Shown in pieces: positions 13,553 through 22,975 of a DNA stretch of 64,000 nt. The first letter of the stretch is position 1; each line of letters starts with the position of its first letter. The position numbers were made by a program, and so were the translations under genes. This DNA is from Rebecca billardiae RCC1528 (lineage: Eukaryota; Protista; Haptophyta): the NCBI GenBank assembly GCA_965240325.2, contig OZ251226.1, positions 558,001 through 622,000 on the forward strand, written 5' to 3'. The notes below the pieces were generated by a model, which saw only the letters and a program-made list of their open reading frames with translations, did no database searches and was not told the DNA's origin.

Positions 13553-14362
13553 AGGTCGGGCTGATGATCCATTTGGCCGTAATATATCGTCCAAGGGACC
13601 GCCTGGGGTGGTCTAGGAGAGTCTAGCTAGTAGTGTAGATCATCAGAGGCAGCGATCCCGCCGATTCAGCAGATTGCAGTGTCAAGATGTAACGCTCCAA
13701 CCAGTGCCCCGGACTGCCGACTGGGGGGGTGGACCGAAGCCGGAGCCAGATCTACGACCTCAATCTCGACGCGATCTCGGTAACATTAGTAGGGGAGATA
13801 TACGATCGATCTGCCAAAGTGATCTGCTGCTCGCTATCTGCATCAAAGGAAATTAAATGGAATCGCGTACCGGCTAGATCACAGTTTGGCAGTCTGAAAA
13901 GTGAATTCGGCACATGCGGACTTCTACCGATCCCTTTCAGAATTAAGTCCTAAACGAACTTACATGCACGCGGACTCAATAAACAGCGCTAGTAGTAAGC
14001 CGACGAGCAGTAGGAGATGTTTAATCATCATCATATATCTCTCCACGCACGATCTTGCTTTTCTTGTGGCACACTGACCGCTAACAGACAGTGTTTAACA
14101 GTTAGGCTAACTACGCTCATATTAGTCATACTAAGCTATACGCGGTCATTATCATCATCATATCATCCCGCCTCAATATATAATTCTGCGAAGGGCTGAT
14201 GGTCCCCAGTGGCAGTAGACGGCATCAGTTGCTCCGCTTTGTGCAGTTGGGTTTCCAGAATTTGATGATCATTCGCCTTGCAACATCGGTGGATTTCGGT
14301 GGTGCTCGGAGGGCTTCGTCGTGATGTCAGCACTCGATCATCAGCCGTGAGGCTGCACAGAG

Positions 14363-17300
14363 TCAGGTGGCGTGCGCCCCGTCGGGCGCGACCACTGACG
14401 CGCCGCTCCGCCCGCTGCGGTGCGAGGAGCCGCTACGTCCGGAGAGCAAGTTGCGCCGAGAGCCATGTCGACTGCTGCCGCCCGTGCTGGCCTCGGCGAT
14501 GTGCTGGGCGTGGCTCGCCCAGGTCCAGCTCGAGTCGCGATTGACGAGGCGCGAGCGTTGGCCCGGAGTGCTCTGGAGCAGCGCCCGCGGCCGCAGCGCC
14601 GCCGACCTGACCGAGCCTGGCTGCTCGGCCTGGTCGCGCCTCGCGCCTTCTCGCACCATCGCCAGGATCTTGTCGTGACTGCTCGGCGGCAGGTGCTTGG
14701 CGAGGATCGTGGGCGGCGGCGCACGGCGGTGGCGGGGCTCGGAGCGCCCCATCATCGAATGGCGCCGGCGCGGCCCGCTGGCTGCGCCGCCGAGCGCAAC
14801 CGTTCGGGCGGCTGAGTGCAGACCGCCAGCCGGCCGAGGCGGCTGGCCGGTGCTCAGCTCGGTCCGTCCCTCCTCCACGGATGGGCACGAGCTCATCAAG
14901 CCCGGAGCCGAGGAGCGCGCGGCGGAGCCGGCGGCACCCTCCGACCGGCGCAAGCCGCGCCATTCGGGCGCGCGGGTCCTTAGGCCATCGCTCGTGCGCT
15001 GCCGGGTGAGCCACCAGCGGGGCCGAGCCGAGCCCGCCCCAGCCGCGCCGTGATGCACCGCCACCGGGCTCGGTGGCCTGGCGACGGCGTCGGCCTGGTC
15101 CCATTCCCTCGGCGTGCTCGAGCTCGAGTCCCGCCCGCTCCCCGCGCCGCCCGACTGCGCGAGGCCCATGCCCTCGAGCTCGGTGCTGAGCGCGCCTGCC
15201 GCGACCCGCGCCACGCTCAGAAGGCCTCCGAAGAATTCGCTCGGGAAGTAGCGCTCGGTGGTGGCCGGGTCGGCGTCGAGCAGCACGGCCTGCGAGGCGG
15301 GGGTGCCGCCTCCGCCCCCGCCGCCGGCGCCACCGCCGTCGCCGCCGGCGCCAGCAGCCTGCTCCTCCGCCACGCGCTGCAGCTTGGCGAGCAGTAGCAG
15401 CCCCAGGATCGGGTCGACCAGCTTGCTCTTGTCCGCCTCGTCCGAGAACTTCCCGTGCAACACGAGGGCGACGGAGTCGAGCCAGCCCGGCCGCTCGTGC
15501 AGGGGCAGCAGCGCGGGGCCCTGCAGCGCGGCGGGCGCGGCCTCGCGCTGCGCGGCGGCGGCGGCGTCGGAGCCTCCCGCCACCACCTCGCGCTCCTCAC
15601 ACCGCGCCGCCGCGCCCGCCGCGCCACCGCCATCCCACAGGTGCATGCCCACCTTGCCGCCGAGCGTGAGCCTCGACCACTGCTCCAGCCTGCACCAGCC
15701 TCGCAGCTGCGGCGTGGACGCAGGGGCGCGTGCGTGCGCGCGGCCGGGGCGCGTGGCTCGGCGCACGCGGCGCGCATGGCGCGGCGCTCGCGCCGCCGCG
15801 CGCGCGCGCGCGCACTTGATACGTGTCGACGCCGCAGGGCGCGCCGGTGTCTGCGTGCGTGGCGGGCGGCGCCACGACCACAAAGTGGCGCATCGCTGCC
15901 GCGCACACCGCGAGCGTGTCGATGGCGCGCTGCTTGGACGTGGCGTTCTTCTGCGGGATGCACGAGTAGTCGATCTGCGCGCCGCGCAGGCGCACAGCAC
16001 GGCCGGCGGGCGGCGGGTTGAGTGCCGCGCGCGCGCGCGCGGGAGGCGCGCCCGGCGCGCGCAGAGGCCGCGCGTACCCACACATAGAGCTCGGCGGGCT
16101 GCGCGCCCGTCCGAGCGCACAGCTCGGCGCACGCCGCACAGATGGCGTCGAAGTGGACGTTCTGGGGGTCGGGCTCGGAGGAGCCGAGCCACTGCGCGCG
16201 GAGGCGCGGCGAGCGCAGGGCACAGCGCGTCAGAGGCCGCCGGCGCGTGCGCGCGCGATTCGGGCGAGCACGCGAGTTGAGAGAGCGGCGGGCGTGCGAG
16301 TGCACACGCTCGACGCGCGGCGCGGCGCTGGCTGGCCGCTCGGGAGCCGCACACAATCATCGGCAACGCACAGCGCGCGCGCAGCAGCAGCAGCAGCGGC
16401 ACGGGCCCCTACCGCGCGCACGCGCTCGCCCTCCCTGCTGCTGCCGCGCGCGCGCGCCCGAGGTGCGTCTCTCGGCCGCCAGATCGCCATCTCGCGCGCG
16501 TGTGCGCACCTGGTGCGAGACGAAGACGGTCTCGTGCCGCGCGCAGAAGGCCCTCAGCTCCTCGTACGTGTCGAGGGTGGCGAGCTGCGCGCGCACGTGC
16601 TCGTGCGGCGCGAGCCGGCCCAGCGCGCGCAGGCTGGCGAAGGGCAGCAGCACCACGGGGCACTTGAGCTCGACGACTGTCGAGAGAGCCGCGAGCACGC
16701 GCGCCACGTTCGCCTCGTCCTGCTCGCGCTGCGCCACGAGAGCCGAGCGCACGCGCGCGGCGGCGCGCGAGGCGCCATAGAGCAAGGCCGCGAGGACGAG
16801 CGCGCCGATCACCGCCGTGAGCGCGTACACCAGCGCAGCCCGCCAGAACGCCACCTGGTCCGTCGACGGGCTGGCGCGCACCATCACCGTGGCCGAGGCC
16901 GAGCTCGCGCCCTCCTCGTCCTCTGCGACGTATTGCAAAGCGCTCGAGCCGGGCGCAAGCGCGCGCACCCACACCGTGTGCTCGCCCAGCGGGAGCGAGG
17001 CAGGCAGCCGCAGCGCGCGCGCCGACGCCTCGCCGTCGCGCTTGCTCGCGTACAGCTCGAGGGCCGCCCCGTCCTCCTCGAGCGCCTGCAGCCTCACCAC
17101 CAGCGAGCCCGACCCATCGGCGTCCGCCTCCGCCGCCGCCGACCCCGACGAGCCCGCCGCGCCGCCGGCGGCACCGGAGGCGTCCGAGTGGCTGTCGACA
17201 TCGTCGACCGGCAGCCTGACGGGCACGAGCTCGCCGACCGTGAGCTCCGCGAGCACGTCCGACGCGATCGGCGCGTCGTTCCGCGCGCCGATCGACAGCT

Positions 17301-20220
17301 CGACCACGCCCGCCGCGCGCGCCGAGCGCAGCGGCTGGCCGGGGCAGTCGGTGGCCGAGAAGCCGAACCAGTCCGACCCGTGCGCGTCCGCACGCGGCAC
17401 GTAGGTCACGGTGCGCACGCCGGTGGGGAGCGCGGCGGACTGCAGCGAGGTGCTCCCGATCAGCGCGACGTAGTCCACGTAGTTCCAGTCGTCGATCCCC
17501 GTCTCCGCGCTCGTGTCCAGCTCGAGCCGCACGCGGTCGGTCTTGAAGTGCGTGCGGCACGCCGGCACGGTCCACGCGTAGTACGTGCGCGTGCTCGCGG
17601 CCAGCTCGACGGCCGCGCGCTGCGCTGGCTGGCGGAAGAGGCGGGTCCAGCCGCCGCCCGGCGCGCCGACGCGCACGCCGACGACCGCGCCCATCCCGCG
17701 CGGCGAGCCCACCTCCACGCTCACGACGTACACCGCCGTGCGCACGCGCAGCTCCACCCACTCTGTGAAGCCCCGCTCCGGATAGGACGGCACTTGCGAG
17801 TGCGAGAAGGCAAACTGCGGCCCCCATCGGCCTCCGGCCGGGTTGGAGAGGTCGCGCGCGCCGATGAAGCCTTTGCTCGCCGGGCACCACGCTCCCGCCC
17901 GCACCGGCGAGACGTCGGAGAGCCGCACGCGCGCGCGCGGCGCGTGCGGCTGCCCGCTCCGGAGCGGCGCGCAGTCGGCCGGGTAGCTGGCCGTCCTGGC
18001 GGGCGCGTCCATAGCACACGGGACCCACGCGCCGCTCGCGCCGTCGCGCCGCCACTGCGGCAAGTACTCGATGTGAGCGTGCGTCGGGGCCGCCGCGCCG
18101 AGCCCGGCGCCGTCGGCGCCGCCGCCCGCCGCCGCCTCGTCCGCCTCGAGCCCGAGCACGCGCGCCGGAATCCCCGCCGGAGCCGCCGGGTGGAAGAGCA
18201 GCTCGCCCTCGCGCGGCACGCCGCCCGGAAACTCGCCGATGCACTCGCCGTACAGCGCGCACGAGGGTGGGCCGATGAGCTGGATCGGGTGGTAGTCGGC
18301 GAAGGCGCCGGTGCCCCAGTAGGACGAGACCGCCGTCACCTCGTGCACGTACTGCGTGAGCACGTCGCCCACGGCGTACGCGTTGTGCTCCGCCTCGATG
18401 TGCACGCGGCCGCTGTGCGCGAACGGGTCGGCAAAGAACAGGTCGCCCTTGGCCGGGAGCCTCGTGACAAACAGGCCGAACGGGTCGTCGCCCTCCGCGT
18501 TGGTCGCGCGCAGACGCACCTCCACGCCGCCGCGCGCGTCCTCCGCCACCTCCGCGCGCGTGCGCGCCTCGACCACCGGCAGCTCGTCGAAGGGCGTCAC
18601 GTCGAGCGTGAAGTTCATCGTGGCTCCGAGCAGCAGCGCGCCGCCGGCGTCGGCGGCGCCGCCGAGCGCCGCTGCCGTGTCGTTGAGCGCGCGCGCGAGG
18701 CCGAACGAGTCGAAGGCGCGGCCGAACTCGTTGGCGTTGGGCTGGTAGAAGACGAACGCCGAGCTGCCCGCGAGCACCGTGAGCGCCGCCTCCACCCGCG
18801 CGCCGGGCCTGTACACCATCTCCCACCTGGCCGTGCCGTCGTCCGAAGCCCCTGCCGGCCGCTGCGAGAAGACGTGGGCGGCGAAGAGCGCGCCGCGCTC
18901 GGGCAGCCGCGTGACGACGAGGTGCTCGGGCTGGCCGAGCGCGCCGCCGCCGCTGTACACCTCGAGCAGCTTGAGCTCCCCCTCCGCCAGCGTGACGTGC
19001 GTGAAGATCGCCGCGCCGCCGTCCACTGGCATCGGCAGCGGCGGCGCGAGCGGCCAGACGTGCACGGCGGTGCCGCCGTCGCCGTCGGCGTCGATCTCGA
19101 GCGCGAGTGGCGCGTCGAACGGCTCGGGCGCGGTGAGGTTGAGCACGCGGCCGTCGTCGAGCGCGAGCGAGAGCCGCTCGCCCGCGCGCGCCCACGCCAC
19201 GTACGGCGCGCCCGGCCGCACCGCCTTGCGCAGCGGCCGCGAGAGCGGCGGCGGCGTGCGCTCGGGCGGCCGCAGCGCGAGCACGTGCCCCTGCAGCCGC
19301 GCGAGCTCGACGGCGTCGCGCATCTCGGGGTGGGCGTGCACCATCTGGCCGAGGAGCAGGTCTCCGTCCGGGCCGATCGTGCCCAGGTTGCGCTCGACAC
19401 GCGACACCACGCCGCTGCCATTGACCGCCGCGGCCGCCGGCAGCGGTTCGTCAAAATCGTACAGCAGCAGCAAGTCCGGCTCCAGCCCGGCGCGCAGCCG
19501 CGCGGTGAGCGAGGCGTTCCAGCGCTCGGCGATCTGCCCGGGCGAGAGCGCGCCGCCGAAGAGCGCCACGTCGTCGAGCTGCCCGCGGAACCCGAACTCG
19601 TCGTTCACCACCTGGTGCCGCTCCGGGTTATCCACGTTTTGCGGGTACACGTGCGCGCCCAGCGTCGCAAACGGCCGGTCGTCGATGAGCGAGCCGCGCA
19701 GGTCGTCGGCGAGGTCGTAGCCCACGCCGTCGAAGTAGGCGCGCAGCCTGCCGTCCGATGCGTTCCACGTGAGCGCGTAGTGGTGCCACTGCTGCCCGTA
19801 CTCCACCGTGAGCTCGTCGAGCGCGTCCCAACGGATCGGGATGTCATTCGAGAGAATCATGTGGCCACTGCTCGATTGGAAGGGCACAAAGTGGCAGCAC
19901 GCGGCGGTGCGCACGAGCTGGAAGTGTATCCGTGGGCCTCTCGACGCGGACTCGAGCCCGTCGGTGCGCGCCCACACCATGAAAGTCGCGCCGCGCTCGA
20001 GCTTGGCCACCTCGGGGTGCGACGCGTCGAGGGCGCGCGCGCGCTGTCCCGCGATCATTGTCGGGTTGGAGAAAGTGGCGACGTAGTTGCGCGCGATCAC
20101 GCCGCGCGGCCGAGCCGCCACGTGCACTTGCGCCGCCGCCGCCGCGGCGACGAACACGGCGCGGGCGAGCTGCGCCACCCGCGCCCCGGGGGCTGGGCCC
20201 CCACGCCCCGCTCCAGACAT
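14363..20220 (-). CDS. Large single-pass receptor-like protein: LamG + Ig/cadherin-like + galactose-binding-like ectodomain, TM, cytoplasmic HET/TIR-like domain; exons 20220-16510, 16191-16078, 15974-15816, 15706-14363
   Basis: LamG motifs QWHHYALTWN..LRAYFDG, FRGQLDDVALF; repeated YxPxA..GxDxF/NDAP Ig-like units; TM AALVYALTAVIGALVLAALLYG; three GT-AG introns restore FVSHQW, YVWIDYSCIPQ, YQLRGWCRLEQW. Confidence 0.8.
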
Positions 20221-20259
20221 GCTGAGTCGCGGGTGGTCGTCGGCGTTGCGCCGACGCGT

Positions 20260-21144
20260 TTATTCGACCAATCGGAAAGAACCGATGCTGTGGAAACTGC
20301 GGGGGCCTGGCGGCCTTGTCCCGGTGGGGCTGGTCGAACACAGCGCGTCTAGGACGCGACGGAGAAGCTTGCCAGGGCCGGCAGACCCGACGACGATGGG
20401 ACGAGTTGGCCGTTCAGCGCTGACCGTAAGTAACGGTATCATCCGGGCTGCCGCGTCTTCTGAGCGCGTCGCGCGTGCGATTAAGCCAGGCGCGGCAGCG
20501 CGGCACTCTTCTGCAAGGCCCACCGAGGCGCACGGCGAGGCGCGCGTCGATGCAGTCGTCGCTGCGCACGGCCGCTCGGGCACGACGGCACGGCAACGCA
20601 ACCGACTAGTAGCACGGCGTAGACTCCTGCAGCCGTCGCTGAGCACGGCCCGTCGGGCACGACGTGGTACGAGCGGCTCGCGTCGGTGTGCATGTTGTGT
20701 CGTGCAGCTCGCGCCGGCGGGCACGCACCTCCGCGATGGCGCCGCGAGCCGCGGGCGGCGCGGGTGACGGCTCGAAGGCCGCGCCCGTTGATGACGAGCC
20801 AGGGAGAGTAATAGTCGGGCAAGTCGGCGAGCGGGTGGCTTATGGTAGGCTTGTGGTACAAGCTTCTCCATGAGGCCGTTCGTGCACGTCATCTGATGCG
20901 GCTGCGGCTGCTTGATCGCCGCCACGTGCCGCTGGATCTCCGCCAGATCGGCGCAGTTCCTCGCGACGCCGACGATGGCATCTGGCGCTGGGTTCGGCGG
21001 AGGCCCGCGGAGCTGATCCTCGTCGCGCACGTGTGTGCGAGCGCGAGTGCCGGCAGCGTCGTCGAGCCACGCCGGCGGAGCGCCAATCTGCGTGTCGCGC
21101 GCGGCCTTCGCCGCCTGCAGCAGCGCGCTGAGCTCGTTCGTCAT
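20260..21144 (-). CDS. Possible hypothetical protein, structure uncertain
   Basis: ATG-initiated ORF MTNELSALLQAAK...; GTGCGT donor-like site near 20728; no recognisable domain. Confidence 0.3.
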   Translation of the reverse strand: MTNELSALLQAAKAARDTQIGAPPAWLDDAAGTRARTHVRDEDQLRGPPPNPAPDAIVGVARNCADLAEIQRHVAAIKQPQPHQMTCTNGLMEKLVPQAYHKPPARRLARLLLSLARHQRARPSSRHPRRPRLAAPSRRCVPAGASCTTQHAHRREPLVPRRARRAVLSDGCRSLRRATSRLRCRAVVPERPCAATTASTRASPCASVGLAEECRAAAPGLIARATRSEDAAARMIPLLTVSAERPTRPIVVGSAGPGKLLRRVLDALCSTSPTGTRPPGPRSFHSIGSFRLVE

Positions 21145-21800: not shown

Positions 21801-22622
21801 TTAGAGCAGCGCGGACTGCTGCTTGAGCAGCACGAAGTAGTCGGTGAGGTAGATTGTCATCGCGATCGGGATGGCGACCGAGATCAGGTTCTTGTCGACA
21901 CCCCTCCACAGCCAGCGCACGCCCTGCTCCCGCGTTAGCCGCCTGCACACCTGGCTGAGCGACTCGTCGGTCTTGAACATCTCGTTCCGAATGATGTCGA
22001 AGGGGTTGGTGATGGTCGCACCCGCGATCCCCGCCGTCACCGCCTTCTTCGCCGAGCGCAGCCGCACCTCCGAGCGCGGCGCATCCGCCGCCGGCTGCGG
22101 CAGTGCGTGCTCCATCGCATCCTTGACGAAGACGGCGACGCAGTACTTGGGCACCGTCTTGAGGATGCCAGCGGACGTGCCGTGCCAGAGCGCGCCGACG
22201 CCACGCGACTCGCGGATCCCCTGCATCGCCGACGCCACCGTCCGCCACGGCGACTCTGGGTTCTGAATCGTGATCGAGGCGCGAATGATCGGCTGGTTAG
22301 CGACCTGCACGAGCGACGAGATCACGAGCGGCGGCGCGACCATCGCGACCGTCGGCGGCGCTCCGGCGGCGATGAGGGCCTGCTTGCCCGCATCCGAGCC
22401 GTAGAAAATGCTCGCGCGCGCCCACGTCATCCCCGCGAGCACCGGCCCGACTCCTCGCCATGGCGGCTTGAAGGCATTTGCGTATTTGCCAAGCATGCCG
22501 CCGCCCTCCACTTTGAAGCCCGACTGCGCGACGGCGGAGGCTCGCCACAGCGGGTAGTTGACAAACGCCGCGGCCAGCGACGCGCCGAAGTAGCAGTCCG
22601 CGTCCGCGCTGCCCGCGCCCAT
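21801..22622 (-). CDS. Mitochondrial carrier (SLC25 family), divergent
   Basis: Three-repeat carrier pattern NYPLWRAS, NQPIIRAS..GVGALWHG, TNPFDIIRNEM..GVRWLWRG. Confidence 0.85.
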   Translation of the reverse strand: MGAGSADADCYFGASLAAAFVNYPLWRASAVAQSGFKVEGGGMLGKYANAFKPPWRGVGPVLAGMTWARASIFYGSDAGKQALIAAGAPPTVAMVAPPLVISSLVQVANQPIIRASITIQNPESPWRTVASAMQGIRESRGVGALWHGTSAGILKTVPKYCVAVFVKDAMEHALPQPAADAPRSEVRLRSAKKAVTAGIAGATITNPFDIIRNEMFKTDESLSQVCRRLTREQGVRWLWRGVDKNLISVAIPIAMTIYLTDYFVLLKQQSALL

Positions 22623-22975
22623 GCCTGCCGGGTGCGAGTCGGTCCTGGACAGGTGCTCGGGAATCTCGCAGTGCGCAAGGCCGGTGCTGCCCCACCGTGC
22701 TCCGTCGCTCCGGTCGCATCCACCGTCATTTCGTCCCGAGTTTACCGCCGCCCCCCCGCCGCCGAATAATGCGCATGCGAAGGCCGGAAAACGGCCTGTA
22801 GTTTGGGGCTGGTTTTTTTTCGGAGGCGAAAATTCACCTTTTAGTGGACCTTGCTCGGAATCATCCAAAAGTGAAAAGGCCAAATCGGCTGGCTGTGGTC
22901 CCACCGGGAGTCGGCGCGCTTTGAGAGCGGCGGCCGCCCCGGCCCGTCAAGCCGAGCGCAGCCGTTGGACGCACG

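Follow-up and report, generated by a model that had tools for sequence, protein, structure and literature searches.

What kind of receptor carries a lectin-like, adhesion-like region outside the cell and a domain resembling a fungal cell-death module inside it? The question is raised by a gene of the haptophyte Rebecca billardiae RCC1528 (GenBank assembly GCA_965240325.2) in a stretch of 64,000 nucleotides at positions 558,001 to 622,000 of contig OZ251226.1, termed the window. The receptor gene, as it is called here, occupies positions 20220..14363 of the window on the minus strand and was read from the sequence as four exons separated by three GT-AG introns. Its product is a type-I membrane receptor with a glycosylatable ectodomain, one transmembrane helix, and a cytoplasmic domain of ~290 amino acids. 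It belongs to a large and so far unnamed family of receptors in marine protists. Haptophytes are major primary producers of the ocean, and their sensing of the surroundings is poorly known.

A Receptor Gene in Four Exons

The cytoplasmic domain is spread over all four exons, and homologues allow the splice model to be tested. The 53-amino-acid product of exon 3 was searched against 1.84 billion proteins (E <= 1e-3) and on its own retrieved 184 cluster representatives, in many of which the match lies near the C-terminus of a long protein. A hidden Markov model (HMM) of 318 positions was built from 42 relatives carrying the whole domain uninterrupted and was run on each exon piece separately, with the pieces never joined. 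The four pieces match profile positions 3-90, 91-128, 129-181, and 183-293 (Table 1), in profile order and abutting at the junctions. Given this collinearity and abutment, the junctions restore the continuous sequence of the family exactly. A six-frame control over the whole 64-kb window found no match to the HMM besides these four fragments. The receptor gene retains all 23 near-invariant columns of the family, defined as at least 93% conserved among 150 members, and transcripts of the MMETSP collection carry the domain uninterrupted.

Base composition follows the same boundaries. In each of exons 1-4, the third-position content of guanine plus cytosine (GC) is 0.89-0.95 and the second-position content is 0.53-0.65. 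In the introns, GC is flat at 0.78-0.89 over all three positions and codon periodicity is not seen. The intron ends are alike in all three cases, starting with GT[GA]CGC and finishing with CGCAG. A preliminary description of this DNA had claimed three GT-AG introns and a domain split over four exons; the first claim is borne out by codon-position GC together with the abutting profile matches, and the second by the matches of the four pieces.

A second source of DNA covers much of the gene. The Logan contig L001 (run ERR14847148) follows window positions 17557..14234 collinearly across exons and introns; the two are 99.7% identical and differ by 10 substitutions, with no indels and no frame break. 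Exon 1 has four of the substitutions, clustered at 17388-17414, and intron 2, exon 3, and exon 4 have two each; one of the pair in exon 3 replaces Thr by Ala at a column that varies. The source of the contig is the same or a very close organism. A protein word search with the start of exon 4 gave as its sole match an unspliced Logan DNA contig from the same organism, and the same kind of search with all of exon 1 had no match, as low-complexity words dominated it.

The gene might be an artefact in which two neighbours, or the parts of a decayed gene, were wrongly joined. The exon model comes from genomic sequence and homology, and long spurious open reading frames (ORFs) are common in GC-rich DNA, an antisense frame of 1444 amino acids being an example. 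Such an artefact is nonetheless scarcely credible. The junctions reproduce the family sequence with neither gap nor overlap, all conserved residues are intact, homologues hold the same fusion in a single ORF or protein, and the second DNA source reads through in frame. The artefact reading is largely refuted, and on this sequence evidence the four-exon gene is real and intact.

Homologues Sharing the Ectodomain

The joining of ectodomain, transmembrane helix, and cytoplasmic domain in one gene, also claimed at the outset, is confirmed by three independent relatives. Exon 1 is homologous over ~940 amino acids to the Prymnesium parvum protein P0152 (E 3e-118), and also to P0103, P0153, and P0154. 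P0103 is a single ORF of 1176 amino acids found on metagenome contigs of Tara Oceans. Its alignment with exon 1 starts at residue 251, passes through the transmembrane helix, and reaches the terminal ..SHQ (28% identity over ~1100 amino acids, E 4e-80); the ORF then runs unbroken through the W-x-D-Y and T-Y-Q blocks. On the Tara contig L002, the ectodomain, the transmembrane helix, and domain positions 3-184 lie within one ORF, and the rest of the domain is found in two further frames of P0103's contig.

The intron positions of this homologue differ from those of the receptor gene. At L002:4860-5260, the first intron interrupts the motif R-R-G-W between G and W, 2-3 codons from receptor intron 3, and there are no introns at the positions of receptor introns 1 and 2. 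The offset from intron 3 could be due to intron sliding or to independent gain.

P0152 is an annotated protein of 1973 amino acids from a haptophyte, and its ectodomain match covers residues 74-1012. The ectodomain is followed by ~8 hydrophobic helices, with a sub-threshold TRP match, and then by the cytoplasmic domain (E 6e-91). In the protist proteins P0153 and P0154, the same LamG-cadherin-discoidin ectodomain, ~900 amino acids long, is mounted on the core of a class C G-protein-coupled receptor (GPCR; 7tm_3 E 4e-31 and 8e-25, respectively). These two proteins align to window positions 17251-19800 on the minus strand and are without the HET-like domain. Because it is mounted on three different membrane parts, the ectodomain is regarded as a sensor cassette.

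A Domain Family Distantly Related to Fungal HET

The HET domain is part of the heterokaryon incompatibility proteins and of some NLRs of fungi. Sequence profiles and predicted structures indicate that the cytoplasmic domain of the receptor is a distinct family and a distant relative of fungal HET. Its place in a protist family marked by the motifs SHQW, WxDY..PQ, and RGWCRLE is given by the collinear HMM match and the conserved residues. The family comprises at least 184 clusters at 50% identity, with relatives from MMETSP transcripts, Prymnesium parvum, Isochrysis galbana, and Tara metagenomes; none of the source annotations names HET or TIR. Viral contigs and bacterial and archaeal genomes were also scanned and held no relatives of the domain at the sensitivity used. 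Sixteen columns are identical in all of the 46 whole domains: E, F-x-S-H-Q-W, the D of P-D-P, the D of W-x-D-Y, the Q of P-Q, F, P, Y, and R-x-W-x-R-x-E.

The likeness to HET (PF06985) begins with its motifs: S-[YH]-x-W at the end of a strand, then W-x-D-x-x-C-I-x-Q, then R-G-W-x-x-x-E. All three HET-type blocks, read from the sequence, are present in order in the receptor. HET is also the only Pfam family that recurs among the 46 relatives, matching 15 of them at E <= 0.1 (best 2.2e-4), and the other nine families each occur once, as chance predicts. In the alignment, the motifs of the family fall on HET profile positions 4-96, which correspond to the SHQW..WxDY..PQ region of the relative P0104. 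The ORFs and single exons of the receptor gave no Pfam match to HET, TIR, or LRR; for HET and TIR, this is because the pieces are too short.

Structure was predicted for residues 580-875 of P0104, which serve as a proxy for the receptor domain. The model has a predicted local distance difference test score (pLDDT) of 92.2 and a predicted template modelling score (pTM) of 0.89. It superimposes on an Ascomycota cluster in which 100% of members carry PF06985, with template modelling (TM) scores of 0.51/0.52 over 189 residues and a root-mean-square deviation of 4.2, both structures being predicted models. The initial assignment to HET is thus upheld as kinship by the three motif blocks, the recurrence of PF06985, and a fold match between predicted models. 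It fails as Pfam membership, as none of the 46 relatives reaches the HET threshold of 22.5 bits and the best scores 22.0.

Differences from fungal HET are also plain. HET stands at the N-terminus of a cytosolic protein, whereas the receptor domain lies C-terminal to a transmembrane helix on a surface protein. Conserved elements that the receptor family has in addition are H-E..R ahead of strand 1, P-D-P, F-x-x-x-A-P..H-x-D-T, and a helical part at the C-terminus that includes D-K..L-G-L and F-P; the family belongs to haptophytes and other marine protists. A remote similarity between HET and TIR, as well as HET homologues in Haptophyceae, was described by Dyrka et al. in 2014 (PMC4986451).

The family couples this domain to many kinds of partner. 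These include ANF_receptor, Peripla_BP_6, SBP_bac_8, a beta-helix, a peroxidase with DOMON, DOMON alone, and TRP-like segments. A fold search of the Atlas adds haptophyte clusters with Ank, LRR (NLRC3-like), MORN, and HNOB (heme NO-binding), and also leads to an Ascomycota TPR cluster. The HNOB fusion is reminiscent of soluble guanylyl cyclase, except that a HET-like domain replaces the cyclase.

Core Fold and Comparison with TIR

The proxy model is compatible with a core of flavodoxin-like alpha/beta type, as in TIR and nucleoside deoxyribosyltransferases, and does not make the domain a demonstrable TIR. Phmmer and profile searches of Protein Data Bank (PDB) sequences returned no meaningful match. 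Foldseek found nothing in the PDB at E <= 1e-3, and its list of weak matches holds plant TIRs, ThsA, and a deoxyribosyltransferase. In VIA-align, SARM1 TIR scores Z 6.3 (106 amino acids, 3.8 A, residues 561-673), followed by deoxyribosyltransferases (6.2), AbTir (5.8), the SPARTA TIR (5.8), MyD88 (5.7), IL-1RAcPb (5.6), TIRAP (5.5), MAL (5.3), and RUN1/RPP1 (4.7-4.8). The TIR scores (Z 4.6-6.3) are no higher than those of nucleoside deoxyribosyltransferases and fucosyltransferase halves.

In the same model, the invariant residues are placed where strands 58-64, 100-104, and 133-137 end C-terminally and where helix 159-172 starts. The invariant Glu of R-x-W-x-R-x-E opens the helix that follows strand 3, and TIR NADases carry their catalytic Glu at that place. 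A review of TIR signalling in plants (Plant Cell, 2022) counts a functionally important Glu in the HET-TIR similarity (PMC9153377). Set beside TIR (SARM1, plant TNL, AbTir/ThsB, TLR/MyD88), the receptor domain has a conserved W-x-x-x-E, and its modelled flavodoxin-like core superimposes over the whole TIR domain at middling Z. It differs in being about twice as long, with N- and C-terminal additions.

The claim of a TIR-like domain is therefore only partly sustained: the modelled core superimposes on whole TIR domains, but there is no TIR sequence match and Z is no more than 4.6-6.3. The comparison with Toll-like receptors (TLRs) comes down to an analogy of layout, ectodomain to transmembrane helix to domain, as the receptor has neither an LRR ectodomain nor a bona fide TIR.

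The matches to MyD88, TIRAP, and MAL bear on whether the domain might act without catalysis, as an adaptor that oligomerises homotypically and recruits HET-like proteins in the manner of the TLR/MyD88 TIRs. Soluble members of the family with Ank, LRR, TPR, or MORN could be downstream partners of such an adaptor, and a role of this kind was proposed for HET by Dyrka et al. (PMC4986451). The 16 invariant columns tell in the other direction, as they are mostly polar (S, H, Q, D, D, Q, R, R, E), lie at strand ends, and are more typical of an active site. An adaptor without enzymatic activity is accordingly considered quite improbable.

The Ectodomain and Transmembrane Helix

The ectodomain of ~1128 amino acids begins with a signal-peptide-like sequence and contains three recognisable regions. 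The first, LamG_3 (PF13385), scores 32 bits, above its gathering threshold of 27.6 (E 1.7e-7), and is found by Pfam in the homologues P0152 and P0153 as well. Residues ~616-925 are the best-conserved part, with 33-40% identity and 52 invariant columns that include four Cys, and have no Pfam match. The AF2 model of this region, made from only five sequences, has a pLDDT of 53. At this low confidence, all 30 chains that match it at Z >= 8 are discoidin/galactose-binding-domain-like, among them the muskelin discoidin domain (Z 10.2, 131 amino acids, 3.4 A), IFT25 (9.8), allantoicase (9.8), and PAPP-A (9.5). The same model also matches many CBM32 modules and F-lectins. The fold is likely a discoidin-type beta-sandwich, and sugar binding is putative.

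The third region holds cadherin-like and bacterial-Ig-like repeats. Cadherin_4 (PF17803; 22.2 bits against 25.1) and Big_9 (19.2 against 23.6) are both sub-threshold in the receptor and are above threshold in P0152, P0103, and P0153, in the last of these at the aligned place. Of the modules first described, LamG is thus significant, the Ig/cadherin repeats are significant only in homologues, and the galactose-binding module is indicated only by a low-confidence fold. Six N-x-S/T sequons lie in the ectodomain and none in exon 4. The transmembrane helix is followed on its C-terminal side by a basic, Arg-rich sequence.

Modules of the LamG, cadherin-like, and discoidin kinds are characteristic of adhesion proteins, so the product could act in adhesion or in the matrix, with a cytoplasmic domain for trafficking or for anchorage to the cytoskeleton instead of signalling. 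This is very unlikely. The same cytoplasmic domain also stands behind ligand-binding sensors without an adhesive role, and its presence on the cores of class C GPCRs identifies the ectodomain as a sensor cassette.

A Proposed Mechanism

A receptor with a ligand-clustered, enzymatic, HET-like cytoplasmic output and a general signalling role is favoured with moderate confidence. The ligand bound by the ectodomain would lie outside the cell, the likeliest candidate being a glycan or glycoconjugate of a particle, a cell, or a matrix. Binding would cluster the receptor, and the cytoplasmic domain would be switched on as a result. The modelled domain may be an enzyme and not a mere adaptor, because its invariant polar residues lie at C-terminal strand ends, the usual place of the active site in such folds. 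These residues are S-H-Q-W after strand 1, the D of PDP, the D and Q of W-x-D-Y..P-Q after strand 2, H after strand 3, and R-x-W-x-R-x-E where the next helix begins. The likeliest chemistry would be one in which NAD+ or a related nucleotide is cleaved or cyclised to yield a soluble signal, as proposed by analogy with TIR, whose catalytic Glu HET reportedly shares. The Ser/Arg-rich tail probably regulates the domain or docks partners. The domain may be a general signal output for many kinds of sensor in these algae, with defence perhaps one of its uses. This general role is suggested because the partners of the family are diverse and the ectodomain also occurs on class C GPCR cores.

Several points weigh against the proposed mechanism, in addition to the sub-threshold HET scores. 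The fold results come from a proxy that is 39% identical to the receptor domain. None of the 46 relatives has a Pfam match to a TIR family, and the family profile finds no TIR chain among PDB sequences. The top structural matches are fucosyltransferase halves (NodZ Z 7.0, FUT8 6.7), and all Z values of the domain are below 8, which may mean a common alpha/beta arrangement only. The likeness of the invariant Glu to the catalytic Glu of TIR is one of place in the fold. Outside the cell, the discoidin assignment depends on a model of low pLDDT, and the exon model is based on genomic sequence and homology. For HET itself, a 2023 review states that enzymatic activity remains to be established (PMC10197012), and the papers found describe no activity for any HET or HET-like domain.

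A more specific form of the proposal can be put forward only tentatively. In haptophytes and other marine protists, the HET-like domain would make an NAD- or nucleotide-derived second messenger in the role that cyclases and kinases play in animal receptors, and sensor cassettes would be shuffled freely among HET-like, class C GPCR, and TRP-like outputs. The receptor guanylyl cyclases and class C GPCRs offer a close parallel. They share with the family the sensor types ANF_receptor/PBP and, by fold search, HNOB, and the LamG-cadherin-discoidin ectodomain occurs on 7tm_3 cores. They differ in output, which here is a HET-like domain instead of a cyclase, a kinase, or G-protein coupling.

The preliminary description had seen in the gene a candidate for immunity or allorecognition. 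As a death receptor, it would recognise non-self glycans or cells and bring about NAD+ depletion or cell death through its HET/TIR-like domain, in the manner of fungal HET and of bacterial or plant TIRs. The relationship to HET gives this idea some weight, as HET is a cell-death effector sufficient for cell death in fungi (PMC10197012). A second argument comes from another haptophyte, Gephyrocapsa huxleyi, whose "TIR domain-containing" genes combine an extracellular ligand-binding region, one or several transmembrane helices, and an intracellular TIR with a conserved Glu (New Phytol 2025, PMC12489294). Some of these receptor-like genes are induced 0.5 h after virus addition (PMC12489294). They share the layout of the receptor gene, for which they are a precedent, and may be of the same family, compared here by description only. 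They differ in that they were called TIR by HHsuite probability and have leucine-binding and EGF-like ectodomains, not LamG, cadherin, and discoidin modules.

An immune death receptor is nevertheless unlikely. The ectodomain is 33-40% identical across species and outputs and is not hypervariable, and the partners of the family are mostly sensors of nutrients, small molecules, or gases. The Gephyrocapsa genes are only possible members of the HET-like family. The immune reading is pure inference, and a general signalling output fits at least as well.

Gene Structure and Surrounding Locus

The features of the receptor gene are collected in Table 1. The window is eukaryotic DNA rich in GC, with 59-76% per 2-kb bin. 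The ORF of 1287 amino acids at 20220..16357 on the minus strand is the start of the receptor gene. The receptor motifs occur once within the 64 kb, a motif scan of the window having found no second copy.

Table 1. Features of the receptor gene, in window coordinates. Profile positions refer to the 318-position family HMM, and E values are from hmmsearch.
Feature	Position	Strand	Description
Exon 1	20220..16510	-	1237 amino acids, open frame, third-position GC 0.945; C-terminal end ..ETVFVSHQ
Signal-peptide-like N-terminus	20113..20220	-	Residues 1-36, basic then Ala/Val-rich; by reading and hydropathy
LamG_3 (concanavalin A-like lectin/glucanase)	19528..19995	-	Residues 76-231, PF13385
Discoidin/galactose-binding-domain-like module (putative)	17446..18375	-	Residues ~616-925, large Cys-containing insertion
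Cadherin-like/bacterial-Ig-like repeats	17122..17442	-	Residues 927-1033, Cadherin_4 and Big_9
Single transmembrane helix	16780..16836	-	Residues 1129-1147, Kyte-Doolittle peak 2.54
Exon 1 tail, HET-like part 1	16510..16767	-	Profile 3-90, E 8.4e-23; ends F-x-S-H-Q
Intron 1	16509..16192	-	318 nucleotides, GTGCGC..CGCAG, one in-frame stop; profile gapless over junction 90/91
Exon 2, HET-like part 2	16191..16078	-	38 amino acids, WLGSSEPDP..ELYVW (W..PDP..YVW); profile 91-128, E 6.5e-16
Intron 2	16077..15975	-	103 nucleotides, GT..AG, frame shift; junction at profile 128/129
Exon 3, HET-like part 3	15974..15816	-	53 amino acids, IDYSCIPQ..FVVVAP..H.DTG..TYQ; profile 129-181, E 2e-26 (partly circular, as exon 3 was used to find the family)
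Intron 3	15815..15707	-	109 nucleotides, GT..AG, frame shift; junction at profile 181/183
Exon 4	15706..14363	-	447 amino acids and stop; begins LRGWCRLEQW
Exon 4 start (first 168 amino acids), HET-like part 4	15203..15706	-	Profile 183-293, E 7e-18; holds the conserved Glu and a ~35-amino-acid Ala/Gly-rich insertion
Exon 4 remainder	14363..15202	-	279-amino-acid Ser/Ala/Arg/Gly-rich C-terminal tail (by composition) and stop codon

Two parts of exon 4 depart from the family. At residues ~25-60 (window 15530-15640, minus strand), the Ala/Gly-rich insertion separates the G-G..M..D and L-x-P-L blocks, and most relatives are without it. An expanded loop is more probable here than a fourth intron, because the insertion is in frame and has a coding-like third-position GC. 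Beyond profile position 293, the tail of exon 4 has no match to the HMM of the 42 relatives. The tail is probably disordered, and it still looks coding because its third-position GC is 0.83-0.92.

Two other reading frames touch or adjoin the gene. The ORF of 1444 amino acids at 16018-20352 on the plus strand lies antisense over the whole ectodomain exon and was rejected as a gene, being the usual artefact of GC-rich coding sequence. An adjoining ORF of 367 amino acids (21801-22904, minus strand) has a translation that reads, by eye, like a mitochondrial carrier-type membrane protein and has no evident functional link to the receptor gene.

Significance

In a literature search, no paper turned up that describes a tail of this kind behind a LamG/cadherin/discoidin ectodomain. 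New with this member is a lectin- and adhesion-like type of ectodomain for the family. The member also offers an ectodomain-matched homologue of the same layout in an ocean metagenome and is a clear case of one ectodomain on three different membrane outputs. In the family at large, very different outside sensors end in one inside domain that is related to the HET/TIR modules of cell death and immunity. The receptor is therefore a convenient system for asking how the domain acts and what the ectodomain binds. If the domain is indeed a second-messenger enzyme, these receptors would constitute a lineage-wide signalling system not yet described, and their output would provide the first chemistry for the HET superfamily.

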